Sequence record: NC_047880.1
DNA: 64,000 bases
Reading direction: 5' to 3' (one strand)
Part shown: in pieces, positions 9,645 to 59,551 of the stretch
How the letters are laid out: the number at the start of each line of letters is the position of its first letter
Position numbering within the stretch: position 1 is the first letter of the stretch
Program-made: the position numbers and the translations under genes
The notes under the pieces: generated by a model
Database searches by the model: none
The model's input: only the letters and a program-made list of their open reading frames with translations
What the model was told of the DNA's origin: nothing

Positions 9645-9703
9645 AACTCTGCATATAATAGGCTAAAATAGCGCTAGATTTGAGGTGCTGAATATGATAT
9701 ACT
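9645..9703 (+). promoter_or_regulatory. boxed sigma70-type promoter, copy 1
   Basis: AACTCTGCATATAATAGGCTAAAATAG, 23 nt, then TG-A-TATACT. Confidence 0.8.
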
Positions 9704-9750
9704 GAATGCGAGCAATAACGCTCAATACACTGATTGCCAAGGGGCATACA

Positions 9751-10389
9751 ATGACTACTTATACATCTATCTATGAAATCGCAGAAGCAATCGACGGCGG
9801 CCTGAATTCAGAAGAAGTTGCGCAAGCTCTTAACATCACAGCGTCTGCACAAGAAATTCTGGTTTGTGGTCTGCAAGAAGACTTCGGTATCTACGTGCCG
9901 CTAATCAATGATCAAAACTATCTGATCGCTGACACAGACGATTTGTTCTCTGAACATCTGAAAGGTCAAGGCGCTTTCACCGTATGCCGCATCTTCACAC
10001 CAGAAAATGAAATGTTCGATCAAGAAGAAGTCGAAGTTGAACAGCTCGGCGAGTTTAATGATTTTGAAACTGCACTCGCAGCATTCGTATCTGCTATCAA
10101 CACAGCCGCAAATCTGAAAGCAGAATTAGAAGCATTTGCCGCACGTATCAATCAACTGCTGCCTGATGATCGCAGTGTTGTGGTTTTCGATGATATCGAA
10201 GATGAAGCCGCATACATGATGATCGTCAAAGTAGAGAACGGCAACGTGGTTGAAGATATCGGCTACAGTATTTCTCACTCGCTTTCAGGCACTGATTGTT
10301 CTTACGCTGACGCGGGCGACTACCCGACAATCGAGCTTGGCAAAACTGATGAAGAAGTTGCGGCCAACATCGCTGCTCTGACATTCTAA
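9751..10389 (+). CDS. hypothetical acidic protein
   Basis: AAGGGG SD, ATG at 9751. Confidence 0.8.
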   Translation: MTTYTSIYEIAEAIDGGLNSEEVAQALNITASAQEILVCGLQEDFGIYVPLINDQNYLIADTDDLFSEHLKGQGAFTVCRIFTPENEMFDQEEVEVEQLGEFNDFETALAAFVSAINTAANLKAELEAFAARINQLLPDDRSVVVFDDIEDEAAYMMIVKVENGNVVEDIGYSISHSLSGTDCSYADAGDYPTIELGKTDEEVAANIAALTF

Positions 10390-10402
10390 ACTGACACATA
10401 GC

Positions 10403-10445
10403 AGGCAGAAATTCTGATTGTATTTGAACTGCTGCCTGCTATTAT
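10403..10445 (+). promoter_or_regulatory. boxed promoter, copy 2 (variant)
   Basis: AGGCAGAAATTC, 22 nt, then TG-C-TATTAT; TTGTAT -35. Confidence 0.65.
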
Positions 10446-10494
10446 ATGATCTCTAGCGCAATGACGCGCTCAACACTGAACGAGAGAAAACAAA

Positions 10495-10746
10495 ATGACA
10501 GACAAGAAAGTAGTTATTGATTTAGTCGCTGACGTTGCATCGCCAACAGAAGTTGTTTTTGAAGATGGCCAGAAATCATCTGAGTGGCTTGCGCCTTACG
10601 ATCTGCGTTTGAACGTGTCGCAAACTGTAGGACCGAACGGCTACCCCGAAGTTGAAATCATCGGCGACGATGCTAATCTCATTAAGTTCTTCGACGAGCA
10701 AATGCCTAACTCTGAACTTTCAGAAAACGACTTGCTCGATCTGTAA
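10495..10746 (+). CDS. hypothetical protein
   Basis: 83-aa ORF downstream of a promoter. Confidence 0.75.
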   Translation: MTDKKVVIDLVADVASPTEVVFEDGQKSSEWLAPYDLRLNVSQTVGPNGYPEVEIIGDDANLIKFFDEQMPNSELSENDLLDL

Positions 10747-10760
10747 CAGCGCCGTACACA

Positions 10761-10789
10761 AGAGACGTTACGGCGTCTCTTTTCTTTTA
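10761..10789 (+). terminator. intrinsic terminator
   Basis: AGAGACGT-TACG-GCGTCTCT followed by TTTCTTTT. Confidence 0.85.
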
Positions 10790-10813
10790 TACTAATTGCC
10801 AAGGGGCATACTG

Positions 10814-11470: not shown

Positions 11471-11478
11471 TTCAATTC

Positions 11479-11497
11479 GCCCTGCTGCGGGGCTTTT
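11479..11497 (+). terminator. intrinsic terminator
   Basis: GCCCTG-CTG-CGGGGC followed by TTTT. Confidence 0.65.
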
Positions 11498-11521
11498 ATA
11501 TTTCTGTTTGAGAGAATCGTT

Positions 11522-12049: not shown

Positions 12050-12105
12050 ATCAAAACTAACCAACAGCCTTGCGCAAGCGGGGCTTTTCTGATCTGGAGA
12101 ATGCT

Positions 12106-12375: not shown

Positions 12376-12419
12376 AACGAAGAGACACCAAACGAGTGTT
12401 TCAATAACTGGAGAACATC

Positions 12420-14762: not shown

Positions 14763-15077
14763 ATGATTCAACCTAAATACGAATGGCGTATGCGCTTCGA
14801 AAACCGTGAAGGTAATCTCAACTTACCTGAGTTACCTCCTGATATCGAAATCTATATCAAAGACAACCTCACGCTTCAACGCATCCCTGTCTTAGTTAAC
14901 CGCACAACAATCGTAAGCGTTAACGGTAAGACGTGTGGTTGTTTACAGTGGCTCGATACTGCTAATCTACTCGTTTGGTCTTCATTTGAGATCTATCGTT
15001 TTACGCTGTTTGTCGAACGAGTCACACGCGAAACTGCATCTGAGACAGCCCTGCAATCTGAACAACTCTGCATATAA
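14763..15077 (+). CDS. hypothetical protein
   Basis: 104-aa ORF with GGAG SD. Confidence 0.7.
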   Translation: MIQPKYEWRMRFENREGNLNLPELPPDIEIYIKDNLTLQRIPVLVNRTTIVSVNGKTCGCLQWLDTANLLVWSSFEIYRFTLFVERVTRETASETALQSEQLCI

Positions 15078-15122
15078 TAGGCTAAAATAGCCGTTCACTT
15101 CTAGACGCTCCTATGCTATAAT
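15064..15122 (+). promoter_or_regulatory. boxed promoter, copy 3
   Basis: AACTCTGCATATAATAGGCTAAAATAG, 23 nt, then TG-C-TATAAT. Confidence 0.85.
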
Positions 15123-15168
15123 AGATTCAAGCAATAGTGCTTATAAATCTAACGCTGAGGAGCGTATC

Positions 15169-15612
15169 ATGACTGTATATCACATCTCAACTCTGACTTC
15201 CCCAGAAGACTTCCTTGAAGCGCGTTTTGGCCACATGGAAAACCTCGTTACTAAAATCAAAGAAGCGTTGAATCGTCCTGATATCGAAGTGTACTTAGAT
15301 GCGGACGACGGGCAGATGCTCGAAGAAGCAAACACAGAAGGTCCAGACCAGAAGATTGACGATAGCCTGATCAACGTTCACATTCGTTATGCAGGTATGT
15401 CGTCTGATGAATCGACTGAGAAAGGTGTGTGGGATATTCTGCTGGGCGTTCCTCATGTTGATAACGACATGGGCGACTGGACGAATTCATACACGCTGTT
15501 CATTCTCGATGAAGACATGGACGCTCTTGAGGAAGTTGCGATTGAAAACGGAAATCCTCATATGTTTGAGACTATCGTTGATCGCATTAACTTCTGGTTA
15601 CCTAAACTGTAA
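15169..15612 (+). CDS. hypothetical acidic protein
   Basis: SD in hairpin ACGCT-GAGG-AGCGT. Confidence 0.85.
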   Translation: MTVYHISTLTSPEDFLEARFGHMENLVTKIKEALNRPDIEVYLDADDGQMLEEANTEGPDQKIDDSLINVHIRYAGMSSDESTEKGVWDILLGVPHVDNDMGDWTNSYTLFILDEDMDALEEVAIENGNPHMFETIVDRINFWLPKL

Positions 15613-20101: not shown

Positions 20102-20492
20102 AAGATACTATCAATATCTAGGTGGTCGTCGATTCGTCAGATCGCCTAGCGGTACTTGGTACTTCGTGTTTCAGCGCGATGGTGCTATGGTAACGAACAG
20201 CAACGGAACAACGTTCTACCGTACAGGTTCAGAAGTGTGGAAAGATATCACGATGACTGAACGTAACCAACTTGAACGCATGTTCGTGGAATCGAGACAA
20301 GCCGAACGCAAAGTAATGAAAGAGGAAGATATGCACTGGCTGACCCTGATCCGTGTTCTTATCAATGACTCAATGATTGAAAGCAACGAAAACAAGGCCG
20401 AATTGGCGGGGCTTTTAGATGGGCTGCGCATAGCGTCATATCAAGAGAAGCTGTCTGATCTAGACACATTATTGGACAAAACGTCTGTATAA
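20088..20492 (+). CDS. hypothetical protein
   Basis: 134-aa ORF. Confidence 0.7.
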   Translation: MLMNKRYYQYLGGRRFVRSPSGTWYFVFQRDGAMVTNSNGTTFYRTGSEVWKDITMTERNQLERMFVESRQAERKVMKEEDMHWLTLIRVLINDSMIESNENKAELAGLLDGLRIASYQEKLSDLDTLLDKTSV

Positions 20493-20516
20493 AGTGTAAG
20501 CACAACCTGATATACT
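20473..20516 (+). promoter_or_regulatory. boxed promoter, variant copy
   Basis: TGGACAAAACGT, 23 nt, then TG-A-TATACT. Confidence 0.6.
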
Positions 20517-20567
20517 ATCTATGAACGCTAGACATTCTGTTTAGCTATTTACATGAGGAACATGTAC

Positions 20568-26850: not shown

Positions 26851-27825
26851 ATGAAGTACGGATTCGCCTGCAAGCTGATTGATAACAAGGGCAAACAGCC
26901 TTTCCCTAATCGCAGTATCAGCTACAAACACTTCGCACCGTTAACTGACGAAGACCAGAGACTCAAACTGATTGAGATCGCTACGCACAACCTGACAATG
27001 TTGCTCGCTATGATTCACTATGTCGGACGTCTGCGTATGGACTTGCGTATGTTCCGCATAACAAGCGAACTGCTTCCTCTGTACACGCATCCGAAAGTCA
27101 GTGCATTGTATCAAGAGCCTCACATACGATCATTGATTGAACCAATGCTTGCTGAGTGTGGTCGTGCTGCGCGTACACGTCAAGTTCGTTTGTCGTTTCA
27201 CCCAGGCCAGTTCACCGTACTTGCATCTGACCGACCAGAAGTTGTCGTGTCTGCAATTGAAGAACTTGAGTACCACGCGTACTGTGCATATCAGATGGGA
27301 TACGGCAGAAAGTTCCAAGACTTCAAAATCAACATTCATCTGAGTGGCCGACTCCGTGCAGAAGGTTTCCGTACTGCGTTCAAACTCCTGTCACCTCACT
27401 GTCGTCGCATGTTGACCGTTGAGAATGACGAGATCACCAGCAGCATCGAAGACGTGTTAACTCTAGGTGACTTGTGTCCGATCGTCTTGGACGTGCATCA
27501 TCATTGGGTAATGACTAACGAATACATTCTGCCTACAGATGATCGCGTTAAGCGCGTGATAGACTCGTGGCGTGGCGTTCGACCTGTTGCACACTATTCA
27601 GTGTCTCGACCTGAGCATGTACCGTCACGTGGTATGCCCGATCAGAACAAGCTGCAAGCTAACAGAATGCAGTTACGCGCACACGCTGAATACTATCACA
27701 ATGAAGACGTAAACGACTGGGTCCGTACTTTCTCTGATTTCGACATAATGTGCGAGTCAAAAGCTAAAAATCTAGCTCGCTTAAAATTGGTGTATTTTGA
27801 GTCAACTCTGCATATAATAGGCTGA
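26851..27825 (+). CDS. uvsE: UV DNA-damage endonuclease (UvsE/UvdE)
   Basis: MFRITSELLP, RLSFHPGQF, LTVENDE, VLDVHHH, HYS and DIMCESKAKNLA motifs. Confidence 0.93.
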   Translation: MKYGFACKLIDNKGKQPFPNRSISYKHFAPLTDEDQRLKLIEIATHNLTMLLAMIHYVGRLRMDLRMFRITSELLPLYTHPKVSALYQEPHIRSLIEPMLAECGRAARTRQVRLSFHPGQFTVLASDRPEVVVSAIEELEYHAYCAYQMGYGRKFQDFKINIHLSGRLRAEGFRTAFKLLSPHCRRMLTVENDEITSSIEDVLTLGDLCPIVLDVHHHWVMTNEYILPTDDRVKRVIDSWRGVRPVAHYSVSRPEHVPSRGMPDQNKLQANRMQLRAHAEYYHNEDVNDWVRTFSDFDIMCESKAKNLARLKLVYFESTLHIIG

Positions 27826-27862
27826 AATACGGCTTGTGCTGTAGGTCGCACCGTGATAAACT
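27804..27862 (+). promoter_or_regulatory. boxed promoter copy
   Basis: AACTCTGCATATAATAGGCTGAAATAC, 23 nt, then TG-A-TAAACT; TTGTGC -35. Confidence 0.8.
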
Positions 27863-27916
27863 GTACATGAGCACTTTTGCTCGTTTAGCTTGTCTAAAAA
27901 GACATAAGGAAACGCT

Positions 27917-30038: not shown

Positions 30039-31095
30039 ACCTGTTATGAGTGCAACCCAAATTGAAAACCGTCGCGTGACTGGTGTGCGCAACAAAGTTA
30101 CTGCTGCCTTGCAAGGTGGTTTCGATGCAATGCGTGTGCCGCGTCCTGATCAAAGCCATGTGCGTGATGCTTTCCGCTTCATTGCTAATCAGGTTCTTCA
30201 CGCAGGCGCACAGTTCAAGTATGAAGACACTAAGCCAAGTCATGCAGCCGCGTACGATATTATTCGTCAGTACGAAATCAAACTCACTGGACCTCAAGCG
30301 CGAATCGCTCGCCCTGATGTTATTGTTGATTTTGAAGATCTGCTGCGTCCGAACTTACAGGCAGTCTGGCCGAGCGTTCTGCGCAATCTAACGATCACAA
30401 ACTCGTTGCTTCGCAATCCAGATTCGAACGTATTCTCTCCTGACCCTGATGCGAATACACAAAACCTGATGAACTCGCTTGCGTTCTGGTTCACTGAACT
30501 TGGCTTGAAAAATATGCTTATCGATCCATCAATCGTTGAGCACACCAACTTAGTATCGATCAACGTTGTCACTGCGGCATCGCACTATGATCTGTCTGCG
30601 TGTGATTGGGAGTATCGCAACCGTCTCTACGGCCGCTCGTATGAACCTGATACACAAGAAGTCCCAGACTGGAAAAAGCCAGCACCTTCGAACTGCACCT
30701 GCAACACAAGTTCTTATGACGACGATTGCCCTGCTCACGATACAGGCGATGATATTGACGATGAAGTTCCTGCTTTCTATACAGACCGCTACATCGTCGA
30801 ATTCGAACACAGCCTGCGTGACGTTGATTTCAACGCTGAAAGGCCTGCACCAGTTGCCTTAGATTCCGTACAACAAAAACAGCGCTTCAAGAAAGCAAAG
30901 TCTAAAACACCTCGTGGCGGCACGTTCGATTTCATGCCTCAATGGTATGTGCTCGATGAACGTGAAGCGAAAGGCGTATACTTCGCTGTCGTGCTTATGT
31001 CTCGTTCTACAGTCGGTATCCCAGTTGTTACTGCGACAACCCGCGAAGCTCTCGCAATCGCAGAAGTCCTGCACTCGTTCGAATTCGACAAATAG
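30025..31095 (+). CDS. hypothetical protein with internal CxC...CPxH motif
   Basis: GAGG SD; NCTCNTSSYDDDCPAHD. Confidence 0.8.
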   Translation: MMTSKPVMSATQIENRRVTGVRNKVTAALQGGFDAMRVPRPDQSHVRDAFRFIANQVLHAGAQFKYEDTKPSHAAAYDIIRQYEIKLTGPQARIARPDVIVDFEDLLRPNLQAVWPSVLRNLTITNSLLRNPDSNVFSPDPDANTQNLMNSLAFWFTELGLKNMLIDPSIVEHTNLVSINVVTAASHYDLSACDWEYRNRLYGRSYEPDTQEVPDWKKPAPSNCTCNTSSYDDDCPAHDTGDDIDDEVPAFYTDRYIVEFEHSLRDVDFNAERPAPVALDSVQQKQRFKKAKSKTPRGGTFDFMPQWYVLDEREAKGVYFAVVLMSRSTVGIPVVTATTREALAIAEVLHSFEFDK

Positions 31096-31096
31096 A

Positions 31097-31140
31097 AGGT
31101 AGAAACAGCGCTCGAAATGAACGCACTTCTATGATATAAT
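31097..31140 (+). promoter_or_regulatory. boxed promoter, variant copy
   Basis: AGGTAGAAACAG, 23 nt, then TG-A-TATAAT. Confidence 0.75.
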
Positions 31141-31206
31141 CATAGCTAGAGCATATCGCTCTCACGTAACCTTTAAACATACGTTAATCAGTAACGGGAA
31201 TATATA

Positions 31207-32995: not shown

Positions 32996-33531
32996 TGCAA
33001 TTTCTCGTTAAGCCAGACCTGAATCGTTACCCAGATTTCATCGTACCAAAGCGTGGCTCTGCGCAAGCTGCTGGTATTGATCTGTTCGCTCAACAGGATA
33101 TGATCATTACTGCTGATACTGAGCTGTTCGACCTGGGTTTTCAAGCTGCTGTGCCTGATGGTTACGTTGCTATTATTTTCCCTCGTAGCGGTCTTGGCGC
33201 TAAGTTCAATGTGCAACTGTCGAACACTACTGGCGTTATTGATAGTGACTATCGTGGCGAGTGGAAAGCTGCTATTCATCTCGGCGGTAAAGGTACGCAA
33301 GTCGATCAACTTGATTGGCTGAGCGCTGCGTATCTGCAATCGGACATGGACGAATTCCCTGACCTCGACGATGACGAAGATCAGAAAGCATTGCTGATCA
33401 AACGCGGCGAAGCTTACGCACAGGTACTCTTCTTTGAAGTGCCTCTGATGGAAGTTGCGCTGGCCGAAGAACTGCCTGATACAGAACGCGGTGATGGTGG
33501 CTTCGGTTCTACAACTGCACCACGTGTCTAA
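32995..33531 (+). CDS. dut: trimeric dUTPase with acidic insertion
   Basis: All five motifs: AGIDL, PRSGLG, GVIDSDYRGE, AYAQ, RGDGGFGST. Confidence 0.95.
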   Translation: MQFLVKPDLNRYPDFIVPKRGSAQAAGIDLFAQQDMIITADTELFDLGFQAAVPDGYVAIIFPRSGLGAKFNVQLSNTTGVIDSDYRGEWKAAIHLGGKGTQVDQLDWLSAAYLQSDMDEFPDLDDDEDQKALLIKRGEAYAQVLFFEVPLMEVALAEELPDTERGDGGFGSTTAPRV

Positions 33532-33748
33532 TTGGCCAGCGATAGCCATCGCGTATTATCTCGTTGGTTGTGTTATGGCTTATCGTGATTTCAAAGTGGC
33601 TAGTGCGGAAGTCAAGAAAGATTCTTACAAGACAACCATTCTTGGCAAAATGCCTCGATATAAAATTGTTTTGTTAGCTCTGATGATTTCCGCCATCGTG
33701 GTGTTCATTGATATCCCCACGTGGCCATTTAGGAAGAAACGTTCTTAA
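33524..33748 (+). CDS. small membrane protein
   Basis: Two hydrophobic segments; start uncertain. Confidence 0.55.
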   Translation: MSNWPAIAIAYYLVGCVMAYRDFKVASAEVKKDSYKTTILGKMPRYKIVLLALMISAIVVFIDIPTWPFRKKRS

Positions 33749-33796
33749 ACACGAAGGGTCCTTCACTGGGCCCTCATTTATCGTAATATAAACACT

Positions 33797-34111
33797 ATGA
33801 GAAAGAAAACTTGCTTGCTGCCACGAGAGCGTAAAAGCCCGCTAAAGAACATGCGCGCCTATCTCGCATTTCTCGCCCGGAAACCCAATGATAATCGCAG
33901 AGTATTAGAAGCGTATTGCAATGCAGCGTTAGCTCAAATGCGCCGTGACAGATTCTTTGTTGGCAGGCTCTTTGCTCATAAAGTGTATACGAAGTCGAAC
34001 AAGGTCGCATACACAGTTGTCTGGATTGACCCATACAACTACGACTGTCTTGTTCTCAATCACAGAGAGAGGAAAGTAGAATTTAAAAATCTATATGGCC
34101 TGATTCTTTGA
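33797..34111 (+). CDS. hypothetical basic protein
   Basis: 104-aa ORF. Confidence 0.6.
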   Translation: MRKKTCLLPRERKSPLKNMRAYLAFLARKPNDNRRVLEAYCNAALAQMRRDRFFVGRLFAHKVYTKSNKVAYTVVWIDPYNYDCLVLNHRERKVEFKNLYGLIL

Positions 34112-34150
34112 TTAGGTCCTAGCGCCTACACACTAGGAGATATTCCAAAA

Positions 34151-35588: not shown

Positions 35589-36530
35589 ATGACTAAAATG
35601 GTTACTATGCCGTGGGAAACTTCTGAGCAACGCAATGACTTTTTCTCTACGCAAGTGCGTCAGTTAGACTTACATCCTGTGTGGAGCTATGTCGAAGTGC
35701 AAAACAATCCTCAGTGGAAAGGTGACCCGCTGCTTCACCACATGCACTATCATTCGACAGAACACATGAAGCAGGTAACTGCACTTGCATTGTGGTTGCT
35801 GACAGAAGAAATGCAGTACGCATGGCAGTATGAAAACGGTGCGCTGCCGCTGGCCGTCGCGTGTATGTTCCACGATATGCACCACTCACTTGGTCGTCTT
35901 AATGATTCAGGCAATATTCTCATCGCCAAAGATGCTTTCAAAAAGTATCTGACCTTCTGTACAGACCAACGTATTATTGATCAGCAAGAGATCATTCTTG
36001 AACTGATTGGCATTACCGAATTCCCTTACATGAAGAACAGACAGCCGAAGAATCTGATTGAGCGCTGTATTCGTGATGCAGATATTCTCTACGGTATGCA
36101 GGATGACGCAATGGACGTAGTGCTATTTGCTCTGCGTCGTGAAGTGAATCGCAACGTCAATACTAATACGCGCTACAACCAAGAACAGTGGGCTACAGGC
36201 CGTGTTGACTTCCTCATGTCCGTTGAGATGTACACACCTACTGCGAATGCAATCATGGCCTGGGCATTAGCTGAGGATAACGATCACAACCATCAATCTA
36301 AGATTGATAGCTGGGCGAAAGAGAATGTATACTTCCGTGATACGACTGCACACCAGCTAAAAGCTAATGACGTGTTGTTCATTGATACGCAGGAAGACAG
36401 TACTCCGAAACGCCGTCTGATCGAAAGTGTTGAGACAGTTCATCCATACCTGAACATATACTTCCACGACGGCTCTGCTATCTCGCTGCGTGATGGAGAG
36501 AGCTGCGTGGTATGCGAAAGACGCAAATAA
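35589..36530 (+). CDS. HD-domain phosphohydrolase
   Basis: YHSTEH ... FHDMHH ... IRDADIL. Confidence 0.85.
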   Translation: MTKMVTMPWETSEQRNDFFSTQVRQLDLHPVWSYVEVQNNPQWKGDPLLHHMHYHSTEHMKQVTALALWLLTEEMQYAWQYENGALPLAVACMFHDMHHSLGRLNDSGNILIAKDAFKKYLTFCTDQRIIDQQEIILELIGITEFPYMKNRQPKNLIERCIRDADILYGMQDDAMDVVLFALRREVNRNVNTNTRYNQEQWATGRVDFLMSVEMYTPTANAIMAWALAEDNDHNHQSKIDSWAKENVYFRDTTAHQLKANDVLFIDTQEDSTPKRRLIESVETVHPYLNIYFHDGSAISLRDGESCVVCERRK

Positions 36531-36531
36531 T

Positions 36532-36575
36532 AGGCTGAAATAGAGGTTCAGCAAACACCTCATATGTGATATAAT
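36532..36575 (+). promoter_or_regulatory. boxed promoter copy
   Basis: AGGCTGAAATAG, 23 nt, then TG-A-TATAAT. Confidence 0.85.
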
Positions 36576-36604: not shown

Positions 36605-37297
36605 ATGAGAACTTTAAAACGAATCAACATCGGCTCAGATACTAACTTTTTTGCGCTTAACGCAATCGTCGTACCTGTTGCTGCAATCTACATGGACGTC
36701 ACTATGACGGAGTCAGGCAAAGAACTGAAACTACCTGTACGTGTTGATCCGAACGTATCTCCTGAAGCCATGTCGATATTTGTTGAATACAAACTGGATA
36801 TTCCTGTGCTTGCCTGTCATCCGATATCTGATACCGAGTTCTATACAGAGATCGGATTTACGTCAGTTAATGCTCGTCGTTTTAATCTTGAACACAGAGG
36901 TGTTTCGCCTATCGCTTACATGGGAATGCTGCCTGACGTTACCGAATCTGATGTTGGGGATAAACGATACGTTGCGCCTTTATCAGTTTATCAACTTCCT
37001 GAACGTACAGACATTCCTAAACCATTTTCAAAGGTCCGCAGATACGGCGCTGTATTGCGTACTGATTATTTGCACACACCACTTCTTGATGCTATTGATG
37101 ACGAAACGTGGGCCGCTCGTTTGCTGGAGCCAACAGGTATGATGTGGTCTGAATTTCTCGAGGGTGCGACAAACGGTAGATTCACACCAGCCGATGATTT
37201 GTCTGAATGCTTCGGCGATCTGGATGCGGAGTTTGTACCTGAGTCTGACCTAAAGTATCTTGTAGGTCTTAAAGTTAAAAATCGAATGAAGGACTAA
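36605..37297 (+). CDS. hypothetical protein
   Basis: 230 aa, downstream of a promoter. Confidence 0.8.
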   Translation: MRTLKRINIGSDTNFFALNAIVVPVAAIYMDVTMTESGKELKLPVRVDPNVSPEAMSIFVEYKLDIPVLACHPISDTEFYTEIGFTSVNARRFNLEHRGVSPIAYMGMLPDVTESDVGDKRYVAPLSVYQLPERTDIPKPFSKVRRYGAVLRTDYLHTPLLDAIDDETWAARLLEPTGMMWSEFLEGATNGRFTPADDLSECFGDLDAEFVPESDLKYLVGLKVKNRMKD

Positions 37298-40210: not shown

Positions 40211-40510
40211 ATGACAACAAAGACAATGACAGTACCGAATGCTGTAATCGTTTGCGCCATGCGTGAGTCTAGTTCTTTCATGGGGCAGAAAGCAGACGGC
40301 TGGGTTTATCTGCCAAGCAAAGAAGCGCTCGAACAATTCAAGAAACACATTGAACAACACAAGCGCATTGAGGAGTACAGCTACATTGTGAGCATAGACC
40401 TCAAAGTAATCAATGAAGCGGGTATGCTGCAACTCGCGGACTGCATCAACGACGAAGATGATCGCCCGTGGCTGTGGTCGAATGATGACTTCTCTGTCAA
40501 GCTGTGGTAG
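40211..40510 (+). CDS. hypothetical protein
   Basis: GAGGTG SD, 99 aa. Confidence 0.8.
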   Translation: MTTKTMTVPNAVIVCAMRESSSFMGQKADGWVYLPSKEALEQFKKHIEQHKRIEEYSYIVSIDLKVINEAGMLQLADCINDEDDRPWLWSNDDFSVKLW

Positions 40511-40515
40511 CTATC

Positions 40516-40574
40516 AAGTCTGCACAAAATAGGCTGAAATAGCGGTATCAATAAAAGCCTCAATATGATACAAT
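40516..40574 (+). promoter_or_regulatory. boxed promoter copy
   Basis: AAGTCTGCACAAAATAGGCTGAAATAG, 23 nt, then TG-A-TACAAT. Confidence 0.85.
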
Positions 40575-40627
40575 AGAAGCGTAGCAGATGCTGCGCTTTT
40601 TTACTTTATAGTCTGAGGAGACTCGTT

Positions 40628-41092
40628 ATGTTAGAACCAATCAAATTCAATCAGTCTGAAATCGATCTGCAAGACGCAATCATGGAAGTAGCTGTGAGCA
40701 ACGTTATCAAGCTGACACCTAACTGGACTGATATTTGTCTTGCTGCTGCCCGCCTGTATCTGACAACCTGCGATATGCTTAACGGAACAATTCCTGAAAT
40801 CCGTTTCATTCATAACGGAAAGTCTACTCGCCTTGAGTACCGTCTCAAAGAAGTTGAAGGTACCGAAGATTTTGAAGCTGACGCTGCGGACATTGAAAAG
40901 CAGAAAGCAATTCTCGACGCGATGTTTGACACTGCTGAGAAATCAGAAGACGGATTCAGTTACGGCGACTTGCTGATCTGTTCGGGTCGTTTGTTCATGA
41001 TTGGTTACGATGGTCTTGCTGGAACCAAAGACGTTCTGAAATTCCGTCACAACAAAAAGAACTTCACTATGCACCTTGTTGAGGCCAAATAA
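40628..41092 (+). CDS. hypothetical protein
   Basis: SD in hairpin AGTCT-GAGG-AGACT. Confidence 0.85.
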   Translation: MLEPIKFNQSEIDLQDAIMEVAVSNVIKLTPNWTDICLAAARLYLTTCDMLNGTIPEIRFIHNGKSTRLEYRLKEVEGTEDFEADAADIEKQKAILDAMFDTAEKSEDGFSYGDLLICSGRLFMIGYDGLAGTKDVLKFRHNKKNFTMHLVEAK

Positions 41093-41725
41093 ATGGAAAC
41101 CTATTTCGTACTCAAACGTCACATGCGCGATAGCCGCAATCTTGCATTCTTCCACGACGATAAGTGTCTGGCGATGTTCTCAACACGCTTGATGCAACGT
41201 GTGCTGGAAATTCTTGAGCTGCCTACAGTTATGTCCACAATCGTTTGGGCAGACGACAAAGAAACGCACAACCGTCTGTTGATCGTTGACCGCTCATTCA
41301 TAACACGCGACAACGAAATGCGCACTAACTTTGAACTGTCGATGATCACTTCGCCTGCTGGCCGTCCTGATTATTCGATACCTGTTGATGTGTGTCGTAT
41401 GCACGACGGCATCACACCGTACATCAAAGAGATTCGCATTGAACAGGCGATTGCTCAACTCATGCTGAAAGAGATTCAAACTCTGCTGCTGTCTGAACCT
41501 AAAGAAGACGACGAAGACATGTATGAGTCTCTTTTAGACGGCGACGAAGTATCGGACATAGAATTCTCTCCTGAGTTCCTGCGTCAGGAAATTGCCGACG
41601 GCTATCGCACAGAAGACTACATGCTTCGCCTGAGCATTGAAGACGTATTGGAGATACACGATAAAGAAGTCGGAGTATTCATGCCAGACCACGAAGACCA
41701 AGACCAAACACCTTTCTATTATTAA
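41093..41725 (+). CDS. hypothetical protein
   Basis: GAGG SD, 210 aa. Confidence 0.8.
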   Translation: METYFVLKRHMRDSRNLAFFHDDKCLAMFSTRLMQRVLEILELPTVMSTIVWADDKETHNRLLIVDRSFITRDNEMRTNFELSMITSPAGRPDYSIPVDVCRMHDGITPYIKEIRIEQAIAQLMLKEIQTLLLSEPKEDDEDMYESLLDGDEVSDIEFSPEFLRQEIADGYRTEDYMLRLSIEDVLEIHDKEVGVFMPDHEDQDQTPFYY

Positions 41726-41736
41726 GGCAGTACAGA

Positions 41737-41928
41737 ATGAAAACAACAAGTGACCTTGTCAAAGAACTCAAACAACATGGCGTCTTGATTATTGAAGACC
41801 ACATGAAACACACTCTGCCTGATTTAACTTTCACGCTTGATTGTATGTGTATCACTTATTCTAAGCGTGAGATTGAAAGTACCAAGCTGGGCCGTGTTGT
41901 TCGTATTCGAATGATGGCCGCACACTAA
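41737..41928 (+). CDS. hypothetical protein
   Basis: 63 aa, AAGG SD. Confidence 0.65.
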   Translation: MKTTSDLVKELKQHGVLIIEDHMKHTLPDLTFTLDCMCITYSKREIESTKLGRVVRIRMMAAH

Positions 41929-42052
41929 TACATGCGGTTTGCCTGACGTGCCTCACACTCAACCACGCATTTGCGGGTGGCATAGTCGGGCTCTTTTTGA
42001 AATGTGTTTGTTTGACGCGCATTACATAAAGATAAACCAACAGGAGGCTGTT

Positions 42053-42391
42053 ATGAACAGATTTACCGCAGTATCGAAAGACGCACAAATCGTTTTGCTG
42101 AGTTGCGCTCTCGCAGGCACGCTGAACATTCTAGGCAGAGAACATCAAGACGGCGGAAAGCAGGTATTCGAATTCACCCTTGCTAAAATTGGCCTCGCAC
42201 CAGACGAGTTCAAATTCATTCTTGATCAAATGTCGTCTGATGTGGAAGAAGAAGTCAGATCTGTTACTGGTCTGCCTGACGAAGACGAAGACACCGCGTC
42301 TGATTTAGACACTATGGAAGACAGCCCAAACAAAGGCGAATATGATACAAGCCGCATGAACAAAGATGGCTGGGAAGATTTAGACCGCTAA
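42053..42391 (+). CDS. hypothetical acidic protein
   Basis: SD in hairpin AACAG-GAGG-CTGTT, ATG at 42053. Confidence 0.8.
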   Translation: MNRFTAVSKDAQIVLLSCALAGTLNILGREHQDGGKQVFEFTLAKIGLAPDEFKFILDQMSSDVEEEVRSVTGLPDEDEDTASDLDTMEDSPNKGEYDTSRMNKDGWEDLDR

Positions 42392-42395
42392 TGTG

Positions 42396-42454
42396 AAGTC
42401 TGCATAAAACAGGCTAAAATAGAGGTTGAGACATATATCAACACCTGTTATACT
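42396..42454 (+). promoter_or_regulatory. boxed promoter copy driving a non-coding segment
   Basis: AAGTCTGCATAAAACAGGCTAAAATAG, 23 nt, then TG-T-TATACT; TTGAGA -35. Confidence 0.85.
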
Positions 42455-42460
42455 TATTAG

Positions 42461-42600
42461 ACAGCGAGACATATGTGTTGCTGAGTTCGATTGATAGCTT
42501 TTAGCTGTATGTGAACTTTTCCCCCGCATACAGCTCTTTTTAAAGTGACTTGATTGAGGTTGCTTTAAAAAAGACCAGCTATTTGATGTATGCAAAAAGT
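42461..42600 (+). ncRNA. candidate structured small RNA
   Basis: ORF-free ~140 nt between two promoters; 5' hairpin plus a three-way junction (helices 42494-99/42577-82, 42503-11/42527-35, 42536-49/42559-73). Confidence 0.5.
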
Positions 42601-42643
42601 TGGACGAAATAGCGGTTGTGCAAAATGCTCTGCCTGCTATACT
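42601..42643 (+). promoter_or_regulatory. boxed promoter, variant copy
   Basis: TGGACGAAATAG, 22 nt, then TG-C-TATACT; TTGTGC -35. Confidence 0.75.
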
Positions 42644-42708
42644 TATATCTCTAGCGCAATAACGCGCACAACGTAGTATCTCATATACAATACTGAGGAG
42701 TATTAATC

Positions 42709-44247
42709 ATGGCTATCGAAACTAACACAAATCTGGTTGGCAAAACTATCGTTCTGTTGGACGGCACTAAAACTAAAATCACTGATGCAATCGCGTCTGG
42801 TTATAAAGTGAAAAGCCGCACAGCCCGCGTATCAACTCGTTGTGTAGTTAAAGACGGCGCTCACTTCCGTGAAATCGAGCGCATGAACATGAGCCAGTTA
42901 GAAGATACAGGCGAAGGTTACGTGAAAGTGAAAGACGCGAAAGCGACCAAGTCTGCTAAAACCGCGAAAGCTGAAAAGCCAGCTAAGACCGCGAAGACAA
43001 CCAAAGCAGATAAGAAACCTGCTAAGCCGTCTAAGAAAGACGAACCTGCTCCGAAAGTTCGCAGCAAGAAAGAAAAAGAAGCGAAGCAACAAGAAGATTA
43101 CTTGAGCCTCGCAACTGCGATCATTAAAGGCGGCAAGAAAGTTGCGCCTGTCGAAATCGAAGCAACCGACGCTGAACTGACAGACGCGATTGCAAAACGT
43201 CTGGTCGATGTTCTCGAAAATACCGAAATCGCCCGTGTAGCTGCTGACAACAAAACGCCGATCGCAAACGCAATCGCAATCACGTACGGCGCTGAGTTCG
43301 CCGAAGAAGCTAACGTGCTTCAAATCACGCTGAACCTGCAATACGCTAAGCCTGTAGTATCAGCGCCTGAGCCTGAGCTGGATGAAGCTGTTGCTCGTCG
43401 TGCTGCTAAACTCGCCGCTAAGAAAGTGGGCAAAGTGCTGGCGAAAGCGATCAAAACTGCATTCGACCTCGAAGATGCAAACGACCTGCTGCCTGGTACC
43501 GTGTTGCTCAAAGCAGAAGAAGAGTTTATCTTCTGCGGCGAAAGCGCGAAACATGCAGGCAAAGCGCTGCTGTACAAAACAGCCGACGATAAGTTTGCGT
43601 CTGTCGCTGCTGATGCTCTGACTGAATACGAAATTGTTCAGGAAGAAGCTGAGGCCGAAGAAGAGGAAGAGGAAGAGGAAGCTGATGAAGACCTCGATGA
43701 CTCTGACGCTTATTCATACATCGCCGTTGATAAAGACCAGCTCGCACTCGTTAACAAGAAAGTGACTGCTAAGTATCACGCTGCAACCGCTGAACGTTTC
43801 GGCGTTAGCGAAGAAGCTCTGGTCCCTGGCCTTGTCGTTACAGACGGCGACACAACGTTTGCTTATCTGGGCTTCGATAGCAAAGGCGGTATGCTCGTCA
43901 TTGACAATGAAGCCGAAGATCAAGATGTTCTGTGCTACTCAAAAGCAGACATTAAATCTCTGGTAGACTTCTCGCCAGTAGTTGGCGAAGCGGACGAAGC
44001 TGATTCTGACGACGAAGAAGACCTCGACGACGAAGAAGAAGCTGCTGATGACGAAGAGGAAGAGGAAGCAGACGACGAAGAAGAAGCTGATGATGACTTC
44101 GACTTCGGCTCTGATATCCCGTCAGAAGATCTTGAAGACCTGACCGCTGATGAACTGCGTGACCGTGTTGTTCACTTAGGTCTGTCTACCCAGAAGAAAG
44201 CAGATCGCATGGACGAAGACGAACTCCGCGCACTGCTGACTGAATAA
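42709..44247 (+). CDS. multi-domain protein with a K/A/P-rich linker and poly-D/E tracts
   Basis: SD hairpin AATACT-GAGG-AGTATT; 512 aa. Confidence 0.9.
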   Translation: MAIETNTNLVGKTIVLLDGTKTKITDAIASGYKVKSRTARVSTRCVVKDGAHFREIERMNMSQLEDTGEGYVKVKDAKATKSAKTAKAEKPAKTAKTTKADKKPAKPSKKDEPAPKVRSKKEKEAKQQEDYLSLATAIIKGGKKVAPVEIEATDAELTDAIAKRLVDVLENTEIARVAADNKTPIANAIAITYGAEFAEEANVLQITLNLQYAKPVVSAPEPELDEAVARRAAKLAAKKVGKVLAKAIKTAFDLEDANDLLPGTVLLKAEEEFIFCGESAKHAGKALLYKTADDKFASVAADALTEYEIVQEEAEAEEEEEEEEADEDLDDSDAYSYIAVDKDQLALVNKKVTAKYHAATAERFGVSEEALVPGLVVTDGDTTFAYLGFDSKGGMLVIDNEAEDQDVLCYSKADIKSLVDFSPVVGEADEADSDDEEDLDDEEEAADDEEEEEADDEEEADDDFDFGSDIPSEDLEDLTADELRDRVVHLGLSTQKKADRMDEDELRALLTE

Positions 44248-44332
44248 GCTGTACTCACTGTAAACTGATATGATAGCGGTCTATGAAGGCCGCTATACTT
44301 TGACTAATCGCGCTGATTGAGGAATCACAACT

Positions 44333-45568
44333 ATGTCAACTTCAAACAAAATGTTATTGAACGCCCGTGTACGTCGTCTTGATGGTACTGTTACTCACAT
44401 CAACAAGATCAACACTAACGGTTATAGCACTGATGCCAAGGGGCCTCAGATACCTGTTAAGCGTCTCGTTCTTGCAGGCAAATCTTTGAAAGAGATTGAA
44501 GCGCCGTTCGCAAAAGACGAGTGCATCATCTCACAAGGCGTTACAGTCAAACTGAACAAACGCCAGCAACGTGAACTCGCAGATAAAACGCTTGATGAAA
44601 AAGCGTTGCGTCCTGACTTCGGTAGCTTGGTGTTTATCGACCCTGACACAGGCAAAGCGACTGACGGCAAGAAAGTGAAAGTGAAAGCTGGTGCGAAAGA
44701 AAGTCTGAAAGAAACGCGCAAGCATAACAAAGAGCCGAAAGTTAAGAAAGCAGAGAAAGTTTCTGCCAAGAACGATCTGAAAGATTCACTCGACCTGATT
44801 GACGAACGTAAGGCGCCTAAGTCTGCGCTCGTTGAAATGCTCACTGCTACACTCGAAGGCGATACGACGAAAGAACAGCGTAAGCAATTCGCTGATGCGT
44901 TTGGTATCGACTGGAAAGCTGCTAAGAAGCTCGGCGGCAAGGGTATCGTTAAGCAACTCGGACGTAAAGCTGCGCAAGCTGCTGCTGACAAGCTGAATGC
45001 TACTGTGACCTCTGATGCGTTCATTAAGCAGATGCCTCCTGAGTTGAAGCGTCTGATGCGTGAAGGTTCGCTGACCCTGAACAAAACACAGATTGAGCGT
45101 GTACTGTCTGCGCTTGGTCTTGATACGAAGTTCTATGCTATCGCAATGCAGAACTTCCTGGGTAATCTGACACTGGCTATCAAGCCTGAAGAAGTGAAGA
45201 CTACGCAGAAGAAAAAGAAAGCTGCACGTCCGCAGTATGCGACTGATAAAGACGCGAAGCGCCGTGTAAAGAAGATGACAATAAAGCTGTTGGCGCCTGA
45301 TGCGAAAGGTATGAAGACTGCTAAGGCTCACCTGAAACAGGCGAAAGCAATCTTAGCCTCTAAGCTGGGTATCGCTACAAAAGATATTAAACGCGGTCTG
45401 ATTGTGTATCACAAGAACGGCGTTGATTACATGTTCGTGGCCTGTGATGTACGCGGTCCGATCTTCATCGACAAAGATGGTGACCCGGCAGTGTATACTT
45501 ACGCGAACCTGCAAGACACGTTCGACTTCACACTGACGCCAACCTCTGAGCTGGACGCCGCTGTATGA
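44333..45568 (+). CDS. Lys-rich protein, probable paralog of the 42709 protein
   Basis: SD hairpin TGATT-GAGG-AATCA; N- and C-terminal segments resemble those of the 42709 protein. Confidence 0.88.
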   Translation: MSTSNKMLLNARVRRLDGTVTHINKINTNGYSTDAKGPQIPVKRLVLAGKSLKEIEAPFAKDECIISQGVTVKLNKRQQRELADKTLDEKALRPDFGSLVFIDPDTGKATDGKKVKVKAGAKESLKETRKHNKEPKVKKAEKVSAKNDLKDSLDLIDERKAPKSALVEMLTATLEGDTTKEQRKQFADAFGIDWKAAKKLGGKGIVKQLGRKAAQAAADKLNATVTSDAFIKQMPPELKRLMREGSLTLNKTQIERVLSALGLDTKFYAIAMQNFLGNLTLAIKPEEVKTTQKKKKAARPQYATDKDAKRRVKKMTIKLLAPDAKGMKTAKAHLKQAKAILASKLGIATKDIKRGLIVYHKNGVDYMFVACDVRGPIFIDKDGDPAVYTYANLQDTFDFTLTPTSELDAAV

Positions 45569-54608: not shown

Positions 54609-55353
54609 GCAAATCAACCGTTACTTCAATCTCATGGAATCAATCCGTAAGCAACTGTTTCGTGTTATGCCTATCTCTAACCGTTACTTGTGCATCGTGA
54701 GTTTCAGTACGCAGTATCAAGCGGTCATGAGCGATCTGGTGAGCAAAGAAAGTCTGCTGCCTGTTAAGCTGCTTGATGGTCTGACGGGTTCTGAGCTTGT
54801 TGCTTACGGCACAATCATGCAGGCAATCGAACAGTGGGTTGCTTCTGGTATGCAAGAGGATTTCCCTCTCGACCAGCGTCAGGATGTTTATTCCGAGTAT
54901 CGTCGTCTTACTACAGACGCAGAGCAGGAATCAACTGAACCTCAAGTCGCAGTGGTTCGTGCTGATACTCATACACGCGCGGCTATCTTACGCATGTCAT
55001 TCGCCTCGCTCGTTGAAGCTGCATCCGACCTTGGTATCTGCCACGATGTTCAGACGAAAGATCTCAAACACAAAGATCTGCAAGCTGCCGTTCTTAAACA
55101 CTTAGGCATGGCTCAGCCTGATGCGGAAGAACGTGATGCACAGGATATCGACAATATCAAAACAACGATTCTGTCTGCTACCGATGATGAACTCCGTGTT
55201 ATGTGTGCTGAGGCTCATGTAGTCGCTCGTAAAGAACTGCGCCTTGTCGGTCGTGACGAGATGATCAGCCTGATGTTCATCCACCATGACATTGAAGAAG
55301 AAGACGATGACTGCGGATGTGGCGAACTAAGCTGCATCTGTCACGCTCGCTAA
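54589..55353 (+). CDS. hypothetical protein with two short helical modules and a Cys-rich tail
   Basis: GAGG SD, ATG at 54589; ends DCGCGELSCICHAR. Confidence 0.8.
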   Translation: MAQKLSEQINRYFNLMESIRKQLFRVMPISNRYLCIVSFSTQYQAVMSDLVSKESLLPVKLLDGLTGSELVAYGTIMQAIEQWVASGMQEDFPLDQRQDVYSEYRRLTTDAEQESTEPQVAVVRADTHTRAAILRMSFASLVEAASDLGICHDVQTKDLKHKDLQAAVLKHLGMAQPDAEERDAQDIDNIKTTILSATDDELRVMCAEAHVVARKELRLVGRDEMISLMFIHHDIEEEDDDCGCGELSCICHAR

Positions 55354-55410
55354 GTCTGCATAAACGAGGACGAAACGTGAGTAGCGTTTAGTACCAGTCT
55401 GTGCTATAAT
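55352..55410 (+). promoter_or_regulatory. boxed promoter copy upstream of the topoisomerase genes
   Basis: AAGTCTGCATAAACGAGGACGAAACGT, 23 nt, then TG-C-TATAAT. Confidence 0.8.
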
Positions 55411-55480
55411 GTCATGAGACAAGTAGTGTCTGAATATGCTAATATCGAGTGGTAACGCTACTCACTTGGAGAATACGAAA

Positions 55481-57520: not shown

Positions 57521-57521
57521 T

Positions 57522-57824
57522 ATGCGCGGAACTAACTTTCCTGTAGTACATGGCACCGAGCACTGGGCAATTCCTTTGCTCGACTATCCAGACATTGTAT
57601 CACCTGAGTTGAGTGCGAAGCTCGATGCGTCACTTGCAGAGATTCGTCAGATTGCTGCACGGAGTGGAAAAGAAATGAAACAGAACGAAGCATTCATCGG
57701 TATTCAAAGCACAGCACAGAAGAAAGATGTTGTTGCCGTGCGTGTGCTCAAAGCTCGCAAGCCTGCCACTGACTCAATGTGTGTGATGGCGAAACTTGCA
57801 GCACTACCTAAAGGAGCGCAGTGA
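57522..57824 (+). CDS. hypothetical protein between the topoisomerase subunits
   Basis: GGAG SD, ATG at 57522, GTGA overlap with the A subunit. Confidence 0.7.
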   Translation: MRGTNFPVVHGTEHWAIPLLDYPDIVSPELSAKLDASLAEIRQIAARSGKEMKQNEAFIGIQSTAQKKDVVAVRVLKARKPATDSMCVMAKLAALPKGAQ

Positions 57825-59476
57825 TGGCGATTAAGCCGAAGAAAGTCAAAGTAGTGAAGTCCACTGCTGTCGCTAAAGTAAAGCCTGCGAAGTTGAAAAC
57901 GAAAGTAGTTGCTGTCGATGACCTGCCGAAGAAAAAGAAAAAGAAAAGCAGTGACGTTGCAACTTCGACTGGTGTTATGACCTCGTTGTATCCGATGATT
58001 GGCCAAGACCCGAAGTTGATTCGTGACGAGAACCTCGCGGACTTCACTAAACGCGCTCTGTTCCAGTATGGTTCATACGTTGTTGAAGACCGAGCTATCG
58101 CTGACTATCGTGACGGCCTCAAGCCTGTGCATCGTGCGTTACTCTGGTCGCTGTGTGACTTAGGCTTACGTCCTGGTGGTGCGTTCAAGAAAGCTGCTCG
58201 TACTGTTGGTGATGCCTTAGGTAAGTATCACCCACACGGTGACGCTGCGTGTTACGGTGCGATGGTAACGATTGCAAACACAGTGCCGCCTGCTGTTGCT
58301 GGTCAAGGTAACTGGGGTGACCCTGTAGCACCTGCCGCTGCGATGCGTTACACCGAAGCGAAAATGAGTAAGTTCGCTGGTAGCTTCCTGCTCGACACTG
58401 ACTACCTCGAAGTAACGCCGATGGTGGACAACTTCTCGAACGATATGAAGCTGCCTCTGTATCTGCCTGCTCTGTTGCCGTACATGCTGTTCAACGGTAG
58501 TGTGCCTGCGCCAGCATACGGCGTGAAGTGTGGTAACCCATCGTTCAGCTTTACGTCTGTTGCAAAAGTCGTGTGCGATATGCTGGAAGGCAAAGAGTAC
58601 GATGCGAAGAAGCTCGCTAAGACTCTCAAGATCAACCACGAGTACGGATGTAAAGACGTAAGCTCTGATGCTGATTACTTGAATCTGATGACAACTGGTC
58701 GCGGCAAAGTTACATACGAACCGCTGATGAAGATTGACGAGAAGAACAAGACAGTCACCGTTCAGACCTACGTGCCACTGGGCATGGCTAACACAGCAGG
58801 CATCACGAAGAAGCTGATGAAGATTGCTGAGTGGCAGGGTGTTGTGTCTGCATCGAATGCGAGTTCGAAGAAGAACAAAGACTCTGGTCCATGGGGCGCA
58901 GCGTTCGCAATCAAGTGTCGCGGTAGTGAAGACCAGTTGTATGAGATCGCGACCAAGGTTCAGAAAGAAGTAACAGCCGCTGTGAACTACTCGCTCGGTG
59001 TAACGATTCGTCGTGCTGATGCAGCGAACAAGTTTAAATACCTGTCGTATGTCGAATACTTCAAAGCGTGGATTGCGTATCGCATTAAGCTGGAAGTTGC
59101 GATGCTCAAGAACAAGATGGCCAAAGCAGAGAAAGCCTTGCACTTGCAGCAAGTATATCTCTGGGCAGTAGACAACATGGACAAGCTGCTCAAAGCTCTG
59201 CCTAAAGTGTTAGTCGCTGCTGACCCTGACGTTGCGCTGTCGAAAGCCTGTAAGCTGCCCGTTGAAGACGCGAAGATTATCCTCGATCGTCAAGTTCGTA
59301 AGCTTGCGAAACTTGAACGAGCTGGTCTGTTAGCCAAGATCAAGGAAATCAAATCTGAGATCGCTGAGTATAAAGCAGGCCTGAAAGAGCCTGGAAAATA
59401 TGCCGCTGCTGGTACTGCCGCAAAAGTTAAGGCGTATCTGAAATCGCCTGATGATAAGATGCCAGTCGGTCTGTGA
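57821..59476 (+). CDS. gyrA: type IIA topoisomerase A subunit (GyrA/ParC-like), without a C-terminal pinwheel domain
   Basis: RAIADYRDGLKPVHR, KYHPHGD, AAAMRYTEAK (catalytic Tyr), P..LFNG. Confidence 0.93.
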   Translation: MMAIKPKKVKVVKSTAVAKVKPAKLKTKVVAVDDLPKKKKKKSSDVATSTGVMTSLYPMIGQDPKLIRDENLADFTKRALFQYGSYVVEDRAIADYRDGLKPVHRALLWSLCDLGLRPGGAFKKAARTVGDALGKYHPHGDAACYGAMVTIANTVPPAVAGQGNWGDPVAPAAAMRYTEAKMSKFAGSFLLDTDYLEVTPMVDNFSNDMKLPLYLPALLPYMLFNGSVPAPAYGVKCGNPSFSFTSVAKVVCDMLEGKEYDAKKLAKTLKINHEYGCKDVSSDADYLNLMTTGRGKVTYEPLMKIDEKNKTVTVQTYVPLGMANTAGITKKLMKIAEWQGVVSASNASSKKNKDSGPWGAAFAIKCRGSEDQLYEIATKVQKEVTAAVNYSLGVTIRRADAANKFKYLSYVEYFKAWIAYRIKLEVAMLKNKMAKAEKALHLQQVYLWAVDNMDKLLKALPKVLVAADPDVALSKACKLPVEDAKIILDRQVRKLAKLERAGLLAKIKEIKSEIAEYKAGLKEPGKYAAAGTAAKVKAYLKSPDDKMPVGL

Positions 59477-59491
59477 TTAATCTGTAAATAC

Positions 59492-59551
59492 AAGTCAGCA
59501 TATTCTAGGACAGAATACGGTCTTGTTATTGTGTCACAAAAGTGTTATAAT
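59492..59551 (+). promoter_or_regulatory. boxed promoter, variant copy
   Basis: AAGTCAGCATATTCTAGGACAGAATAC, 24 nt, then TG-T-TATAAT; TTGTTA -35. Confidence 0.75.

Follow-up and report, generated by a model that had tools for sequence, protein, structure and literature searches.

The 64,000-nt window analyzed here, taken from sequence record NC_047880.1, is 100% identical to the right end (record positions 197366 to 261365) of the genome of Erwinia phage vB_EamM_Y3 (Sasquatchvirus, 261,365 bp; hereafter Y3). Nearly all genes that this jumbo phage carries in the window lie on the + strand, and most of them are small and without annotation; the annotated ones include genes coding for a DksA-like protein, an RNA 2′-phosphotransferase, a UvsE-like endonuclease, a dUTPase, a SAR endolysin and the topoisomerase II subunits. 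Between window positions 9644 and 59551, this region contains twelve copies of a promoter (P1 to P12) made of a 27-bp upstream element, hereafter the box, and of an extended −10 element (TGn followed by the −10 hexamer) located at a fixed distance downstream. The initial annotation of this DNA had listed twelve such copies, and every box core lies at the coordinate given for it. The promoters are intergenic or located at gene ends and share the strand of the gene downstream. The stop codon of the upstream gene is often found inside the box, as its TAA, TAG or TGA. A near-identical 27-mer, also pointed out in the initial annotation, was recovered at three loci (9645, 15064 and 27804), at the last two of which it overlaps the stop codons of gp262 (ending at 15077) and gp287 (ending at 27825). 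Our searches of the literature, which did not extend to the original Y3 paper, returned no account of these promoters.

We set position +1 at 7 nt past the −10 hexamer, and pooled the anatomy of the promoter over 52 sites from five genomes and its spacing over 55 raw sites. Most of the information resides in the box (positions −66 to −39, approximately 28 bits) and in the extended −10 (−17 to −7, approximately 11.5 bits), compared to approximately 3.4 bits in the −35 hexamer. The box is conserved, locked in position and not merely AT-rich, as had been proposed: C−58, A−57, G−49 and A−43 are invariant over the 52 sites, A−55, A−44, A−42 and T−35 are nearly so, and G−59, G or T at −48, T−62 and A−65/−64 are strong positions. 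A/T and G/C bases alternate along the box with a period of 10.5 to 11 bp, with A/T clusters centered at −64.5, −54.5 and −42.5 and G/C clusters between them. The −35 hexamer had been described as variable and often poor. Its weakness stands, since a scan for plain −35/−10 pairs between window positions 9000 and 28999 missed five of the six boxed promoters located there (only P3 was recovered) and showed no enrichment over shuffled sequences; its variability is not complete, as a remnant persists in the form of T−35 (50 of 52 sites) and G−33 (35 of 52). Within the extended −10, T−15 is found in 43 sites, G−14 in 44, T−12 in 50, and A−11 and T−7 in all 52, and the TG dinucleotide is present in all twelve Y3 sites, a pattern that agrees with the sigma70-type element predicted earlier. 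The distance from the box to TGn is rigid, being 23 nt in 41 of the 55 raw sites and 22 to 24 nt in nearly all. In Y3 it is 23 nt in nine copies, 22 nt in two and 24 nt in one, precisely as first reported. Boxes that lack a −10 are limited to three weak matrix matches in the five genomes.

A 28-nt weight matrix derived from the twelve Y3 boxes was then applied to the complete 261,365-bp genome. It retrieved the same twelve sites at 20 to 40 bits, all on the + strand and inside 50 kb, and a single extra match at window position 20379 (12.8 bits), which lies within a gene and has no −10. No score of 12 bits or more was obtained for the − strand or outside genome positions 207009 to 256856, and the other 197 kb thus gave none. 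An 11-base invariant skeleton combined with the fixed 23-nt spacing matched all nine sites of that spacing without mismatch, and gave 1.5 matches in shuffled sequences when up to one mismatch was permitted. On the + strand of the window, a box is present upstream of every good intergenic TGnTAWWMT, and in the remaining Y3 genome the matches to TGnTAWWMT fall in coding sequence and are box-less. The twelve boxed sites are the only host-type promoters of the Y3 genome, and their exclusive presence in a one-directional block of small genes fits an early class of promoters.

The box with its −10 geometry recurs, strand and 50-kb block unchanged, at 10 to 11 sites in each of the Alexandravirus genomes AD1 (Dickeya) and pEa_SNUABM_18 (Erwinia). 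Yoloswag (Yoloswagvirus) carries ten boxed promoters, Dickeya phage JA11 (Salmondvirus) eight to ten, and pEa_SNUABM_5 (Rivsvirus) and Yersinia phage fHe-Yen9-02 seven each, such that the architecture is kept, strand-specifically, across seven phage lineages. Pattern scans of the whole records of the relatives returned zero or one match on the opposite strand, and zero or one with a reversed-pattern control. No site with the invariant skeleton was found in the Pseudomonas relatives PaBG and Lu11. A stricter pattern applied to the 2.9 million contigs of IMG/VR matched 31 stretches, located on contigs of 110 to 267 kb with the exception of one of 38 kb. These matches are almost confined to contigs of jumbo-phage size. 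The metagenomic contigs that were scanned again carry 2 to 10 boxes apiece. In Escherichia coli K-12, which is not the host of the phage, the box matched five times against four for the control, and the box/−10 composite was not found.

Ten of the Y3 sites have one-to-one Alexandravirus orthologues, with identities of 72% for the box and 84% for the extended −10 compared to 38–49% for the flanks and spacer. Non-orthologous copies within Y3 show the same distribution, with 64% identity in the box, 81% in the −10 and 26–38% in the flanks. Similarity is therefore restricted to the putative functional pieces, which is the product of selection and not of a larger cassette that was recently duplicated or converted. 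The most striking difference between lineages concerns position −48, which is a T in all Salmondvirus-type sites and a G in 42 of 42 sites of Y3, Alexandravirus and Yoloswag. Positions −53 to −51 of the JA11 boxes are still variable, therefore blanket gene conversion is not the cause of the uniformity at −48. JA11-type phages and AD1 share an isolation host, Dickeya solani MK10, and fHe-Yen9-02 carries both −48 variants within one genome. We also observed that in Salmondvirus-type genomes (JA11 and the IMG/VR loci L012 to L041) the T of TGn is mostly substituted, as in AGGTAAACT and CTGTAAACT, and that the box and the CGCTGG that follows it are nearly invariant. The loss of most TG dinucleotides together with a most uniform box implies that the box bears more of the recognition in these phages.

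One part of this organization had not been mentioned in the initial annotation. At approximately 40 of the 52 sites, the predicted transcript opens with a short G+C-rich hairpin that begins between about −3 and +5. The folds, of mean z −1.57, are distinct from those of random 40-mers (Mann–Whitney p = 1.6e-4). Frequent loops are AAUAAC, AAUGAC and AAUAGU. Orthologous sites hold the stem by compensating changes, as exemplified by P3, in which the stem halves are AAGCA/TGCTT in Y3, GAGC/GCTC in AD1 and TGAGC/GCTCA in pEa_SNUABM_18. Established work on 5′-terminal stem-loops and RNase E links such structures to mRNA stabilization. By analogy, a stabilizing role is likely for the leader hairpins of Y3, and they may alternatively bind a protein or act in antitermination.

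The twelve promoters are all on the + strand, and their leaders extend over approximately 20 to 60 nt to the annotated start codons, with the exception of P9, which has no gene after it, and P12 (approximately 264 nt). Orthologous sites are given as positions in the loci L002 (AD1), L003 (pEa_SNUABM_18), L004 (Yoloswag) and L005 (JA11). P1 (9644–9723) has a matrix score of 36.6 to 40 bits, with a box at 9644–9671, TGn/−10 at 9695–9703 (spacing of 23 nt), a predicted start at about 9710 and a hairpin at 9710–9723 ahead of gp251 (start at 9751). P2 (10387–10470) has the weakest box (10387–10414; 11 to 20 bits), TGn/−10 at 10437–10445 with a spacing of 22 nt, and a hairpin at 10455–10470. It precedes gp252 (start at 10495) and corresponds to L002:5129 and L003:5811. 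In P3 (15063–15142), the box (15063–15090) overlaps the stop codon of gp262 at 15075–15077, and is followed by TGn/−10 at 15114–15122 (23 nt), a hairpin at 15129–15142 and gp263 (start at 15169). P4 (20457–20545) lies upstream of the radical-SAM gene gp274, with its box at 20457–20484, TGn/−10 at 20508–20516 (23 nt) and hairpin at 20527–20545; its orthologues are at L002:14634 and L003:15729. The box of P5 (27803–27884), at 27803–27830, overlaps the end of the UvsE-like gene gp287 (stop codon at 27823–27825), and TGn/−10 (27854–27862; 23 nt) and a hairpin (27867–27884) precede gp288. Likewise, the box of P6 (31081–31162), at 31081–31108, holds the gp294 stop codon (31093–31095), and gp295 follows TGn/−10 at 31132–31140 (23 nt) and a hairpin at 31148–31162. 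P7 (36516–36575) has no leader hairpin; its box (36516–36543), which holds the stop codon of gp303 (36528–36530) and has the same sequence in AD1 and pEa_SNUABM_18, lies 23 nt from TGn/−10 (36567–36575), and gp304 starts at 36605.

P8 (40515–40598), upstream of gp311, combines a box at 40515–40542 and TGn/−10 at 40566–40574 with a strong 9-bp hairpin at 40577–40598 (−13.3 kcal/mol, z of −4.05) followed by a T run. This hairpin and T run (40577–40604) resemble an intrinsic terminator, here at the extreme 5′ end of the transcript, and are conserved in AD1 and pEa_SNUABM_18. P9 (42395–42483; box at 42395–42422, TGn/−10 at 42446–42454, hairpin at 42462–42483) is followed by approximately 124 nt devoid of open reading frames (ORFs) up to the next boxed promoter, for which reason it may drive a small RNA (window 42455–42584). 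Its orthologues in AD1 (L002:38732) and pEa_SNUABM_18 (L003:38827) lie upstream of protein genes that are missing from Y3. P10 (42585–42667) has its box at 42585–42612, TGn/−10 at 42635–42643 with a spacing of 22 nt, and a hairpin at 42654–42667 ahead of gp315 (start at 42709). Searches for sequencing runs gave only DNA or metagenome runs and doubtful RNA, with no RNA run covering the phage, and four runs compared with window positions 40400 to 44400 returned scattered short contigs, low-complexity matches and no 5′ ends. P11 (55351–55431) precedes the gene of the topoisomerase II large subunit. The first bases of its box (55351–55378) are the gp326 stop codon, its TGn/−10 is at 55402–55410 (23 nt), and its hairpin, at about 55417–55431, was placed by eye, the minimum-energy fold not giving this stem (z of −0.29). 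In Yoloswag (L004:45967) and JA11 (L005:47213), the topoisomerase gene likewise has an orthologue of P11 ahead of it. Finally, P12 (59491–59551; box at 59491–59518, TGn/−10 at 59543–59551) is the copy with a spacing of 24 nt. Its long leader reaches gp330 (start at 59822), and its orthologue is at AD1 record position 257075.

Hairpins resembling intrinsic terminators are enriched between window positions 9000 and 28999 (33 against 16.5 in shuffled sequences). The strongest ones are on the + strand between genes, for instance at 10760, 11479, 12066, 12767, 13859, 16919 and 26797, and their location therefore divides the putative early block into several transcription units. Elsewhere in the window, approximately 620 nt between the dUTPase and SAR endolysin genes (33532–34150) are unannotated and contain two ORFs of approximately 100 codons (33455–33748 and 33797–34111). 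Two further conserved motif classes, scattered over the remaining Y3 genome, were noted. TCTGTAAATA has approximately 30 to 40 intergenic copies on both strands, including one just ahead of the sigma factor gene and one directly ahead of the P12 box, and ACGCTAATTT has approximately 12 intergenic copies, mostly ahead of − strand genes. In the window, TGTAAATA occurs at 4716, 12800, 29144, 48094 and 59483, and GCTAATT at 7831. The ACGCTAATTT and TCTGTAAATA classes probably serve a phage-modified polymerase as middle or late promoters. The whole looks like an early/middle/late cascade on the host polymerase, in which the boxed promoters would be the host-sigma70 class.

The interpretation that we favor, with a confidence that falls just short of an even chance, is that the boxed sites are sigma70 early promoters equipped with a strict, clade-specific UP (upstream promoter)-like element read by the polymerase alpha subunit's C-terminal domain (alpha-CTD). 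According to this model, the promoters would be used by host sigma70 RNA polymerase, of which sigma regions 2.4 and 3.0 would read the near-consensus TGnTATAAT. With the −35 reduced to T−35 and G−33, the lost upstream affinity would be supplied by the −66 to −39 element, in which A tracts at approximately −43, −54 and −64 would face the same side of the DNA, one helical turn apart. Two alpha-CTDs would dock at these tracts in the minor groove, beside sigma region 4, and the invariant G/C steps (GCA at −59 to −57, TGG at −50 to −48 and CA at −46/−45) would set DNA bend or flexibility, or add contacts beyond the known UP consensus. The short 5′-terminal hairpin of the transcript would then probably shield early mRNA from 5′-end-dependent decay. 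UP elements are read in the minor groove through a proximal subsite at −45 to −37 and a distal subsite at −58 to −45 (PMC2613000). The location of the box, at −66 to −39 in all sites, corresponds to that of UP elements, which extend from about −60 to −40 and adjoin the −35. The UP consensus reportedly established by Estrem in 1998 contains A runs, with which A−57, A−55 and A−44 to A−42 of the box are in register; the invariant C−58 and G−49 and the conserved G−59, G/T−48 and C−46 fall outside it. The geometry of the box, the register of its A tracts and the weak −35 argue that it acts where alpha-CTD acts, and the invariant G/C positions point to the reading of something beyond the known alpha-CTD preference.

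Several observations weigh against this interpretation. A/T-rich minor grooves are what alpha-CTD reads, and conservation is loose in natural UP elements; with invariant C−58 and G−49 and approximately 28 bits, the box looks more like a site at which a sequence-specific protein would bind. The split at −48 by lineage despite a common Dickeya solani host further hints at a reader supplied by the phage, a hint that is weakened because fHe-Yen9-02 mixes both variants.

Such a reader is the explanation to which we give the most weight after an UP-like element, as a real possibility though one well short of even. A sequence-specific protein, injected along with the DNA or translated from the earliest transcripts, would bind the box and activate sigma70 promoters, perhaps through a class I-like bridge to alpha-CTD at the −43 A tract, or would later shut them off jointly. 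The information content of the box, its invariant C−58, A−57 and G−49, its two G/C clusters 9 to 10 bp apart and its asymmetry are all compatible with this possibility, as is the fact that −48 tracks the phage lineage and not the host while adjacent positions vary. The box is also most uniform in the Salmondvirus-like genomes in which TG is mostly lost, and the motif is nearly clade-limited in IMG/VR; E. coli K-12 has no composite, and its box matches stay at control level. On the other hand, both box variants are tolerated in fHe-Yen9-02, and a newly made activator would require a box-independent first promoter, of which none was seen. Six-frame domain scans of Y3 provided no candidate, although the approximately 80 early proteins were not all scanned for DNA-binding domains. 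No match to HTH_3, Sigma70_r4, MotCF, AsiA or ADPrib_exo_Tox (PF03496) was found in the six-frame Pfam scans, those for MotCF and AsiA being negative at E ≤ 1, a level at which very distant analogues could escape. A scan for a T7-type RNA polymerase gave no match in Y3, but the control search likewise matched no control genome. In a more specific and, in our opinion, doubtful version, the reader would be packaged in the virion and injected, ready at time zero, and would recruit sigma70 polymerase to about a dozen promoters while co-evolving with the box (G−48 versus T−48). To our knowledge, sequence-specific activators that are injected are not known from any phage, nor has the activation of early promoters by such a protein been described. 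If this version were true, T4 Alt would have in the reader a counterpart specific for a DNA sequence.

The remaining explanations appear improbable to different degrees. A transcription factor of the Enterobacterales host, borrowed by the phage, would account for the need of early promoters to fire ahead of phage protein synthesis, and for a clade limited to Erwinia, Dickeya and Yersinia hosts with no box in PaBG and Lu11; we nevertheless consider it improbable given that the box variant tracks the phage lineage rather than the host, and given the control-level box matches and lack of composites in E. coli K-12, bearing in mind that E. coli is not the host. Sites for Fis, CRP, IHF, sigma54, PhoB, CpxR, TyrR and Cra, compared by hand through their consensus sequences, gave no consistent fit to the box. 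A sigma54-like GG-N10-GC is found on the reverse strand in JA11-type boxes only. It is less plausible still that the box is the upstream recognition element of a polymerase carrying the phage sigma factor gp241. This protein, encoded at window positions 1–422 (record positions 196750–197787), carries the annotation of an RNA polymerase sigma factor and has a weak Sigma70_r2 match (E of 0.025), and the sigma70-family gene of PaBG has HHpred support and was grouped with the sigma genes of related phages (PMC7412058). However, TGnTATAAT is the signature of housekeeping sigma70, the downstream edge of the box lies 3 nt before the −35 position, beyond the reach of region 4, and region 4 is not detectable in gp241. 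Moreover, the ACGCTAATTT and TCTGTAAATA classes are better candidates for promoters of a phage sigma factor, TGTAAATA being found upstream of the sigma gene. Least probable of all, and hardly tenable in our view, is that the repeats act chiefly as recombination cassettes whose likeness is maintained by gene conversion, and which shuffle gene modules and owe their conservation to something other than promoter function. Every repeat is indeed a promoter and stem-loop module between small ORFs, and the genes found between the orthologues of P9 and P10 in AD1 and pEa_SNUABM_18 are missing from Y3. Yet similarity ends at the borders of the box and −10, with flanks at background, sites are orthologous across genera, and variable box positions remain variable. 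P9 and P10 are both retained in Y3, therefore the gene loss was not a box-to-box deletion.

Among known systems, the closest analogue of the boxed promoters is the UP element or the T4 early promoter of the UP/−35/TGn/−10 type. As in rrnB P1, the upstream element occupies −40 to −60, has two to three A/T clusters one helical turn apart with runs of A from −57 to −55 and from −44 to −42, and offsets a weak −35. Unlike an UP element, the Y3 box has invariant G/C positions (G−59, C−58, G−49, G/T−48, C−46) and approximately 28 bits, reaches −66 and follows one design at every promoter of the genome. T4 early promoters have an UP/−35/TGn/−10 organization with extra consensus positions of unknown meaning, and are stimulated by injected Alt (PMC2988021). 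They share with the boxed promoters the predicted use of host sigma70 polymerase, TGn, a good −10 and UP-like upstream parts, and differ by a good −35 and an A/T-rich upstream consensus. For Alt itself, no PF03496 ADP-ribosyltransferase match exists in Y3, the coverage of Alt by this model not being established. The initial annotation had likened the box to the T4 MotA box, which also pairs a phage-specific box with a host-type −10. This comparison does not survive scrutiny. The MotA box is centered at −30, 12 ± 1 bp from the −10, and takes the place of the −35 (PMC2988021), whereas the Y3 box, at −66 to −39, ends 23 nt upstream of TGn, T−35 and G−33 are retained, and Pfam scans gave no match to AsiA or to the C-terminal domain of MotA. 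A specific site upstream of an A tract near −43 is also a feature of class I activator sites (for example CRP at −61.5, with alpha-CTD at approximately −43), but the Y3 box lacks dyad symmetry and is centered near −55, and no known factor was found to match it. Promoter-stem-loop (PeSL) cassettes, reportedly described in T4-type phages by Arbiol et al. in 2010, resemble the Y3 sites as repeated early promoter and stem-loop modules between small early ORFs. In Y3, by contrast, similarity is restricted to functional positions and sites are orthologous between Y3, AD1 and pEa_SNUABM_18, not mobile.

The boxed promoters are clade-wide and look functional, and they depart from a promoter design already known by their invariant G/C positions. 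Their upstream element is much more conserved than any natural UP element; either alpha-CTD or the wrapping of upstream DNA has sequence preferences not yet understood, or a further factor exists. Combined with their 5′ hairpins, these promoters could provide compact, strong-looking engineering parts for Enterobacterales. For the phages themselves, the twelve sites and their orthologues define the complete predicted early promoter set of a clade of jumbo phages of plant pathogens, with Erwinia, Dickeya and Yersinia hosts, a clade that is under consideration for biocontrol.

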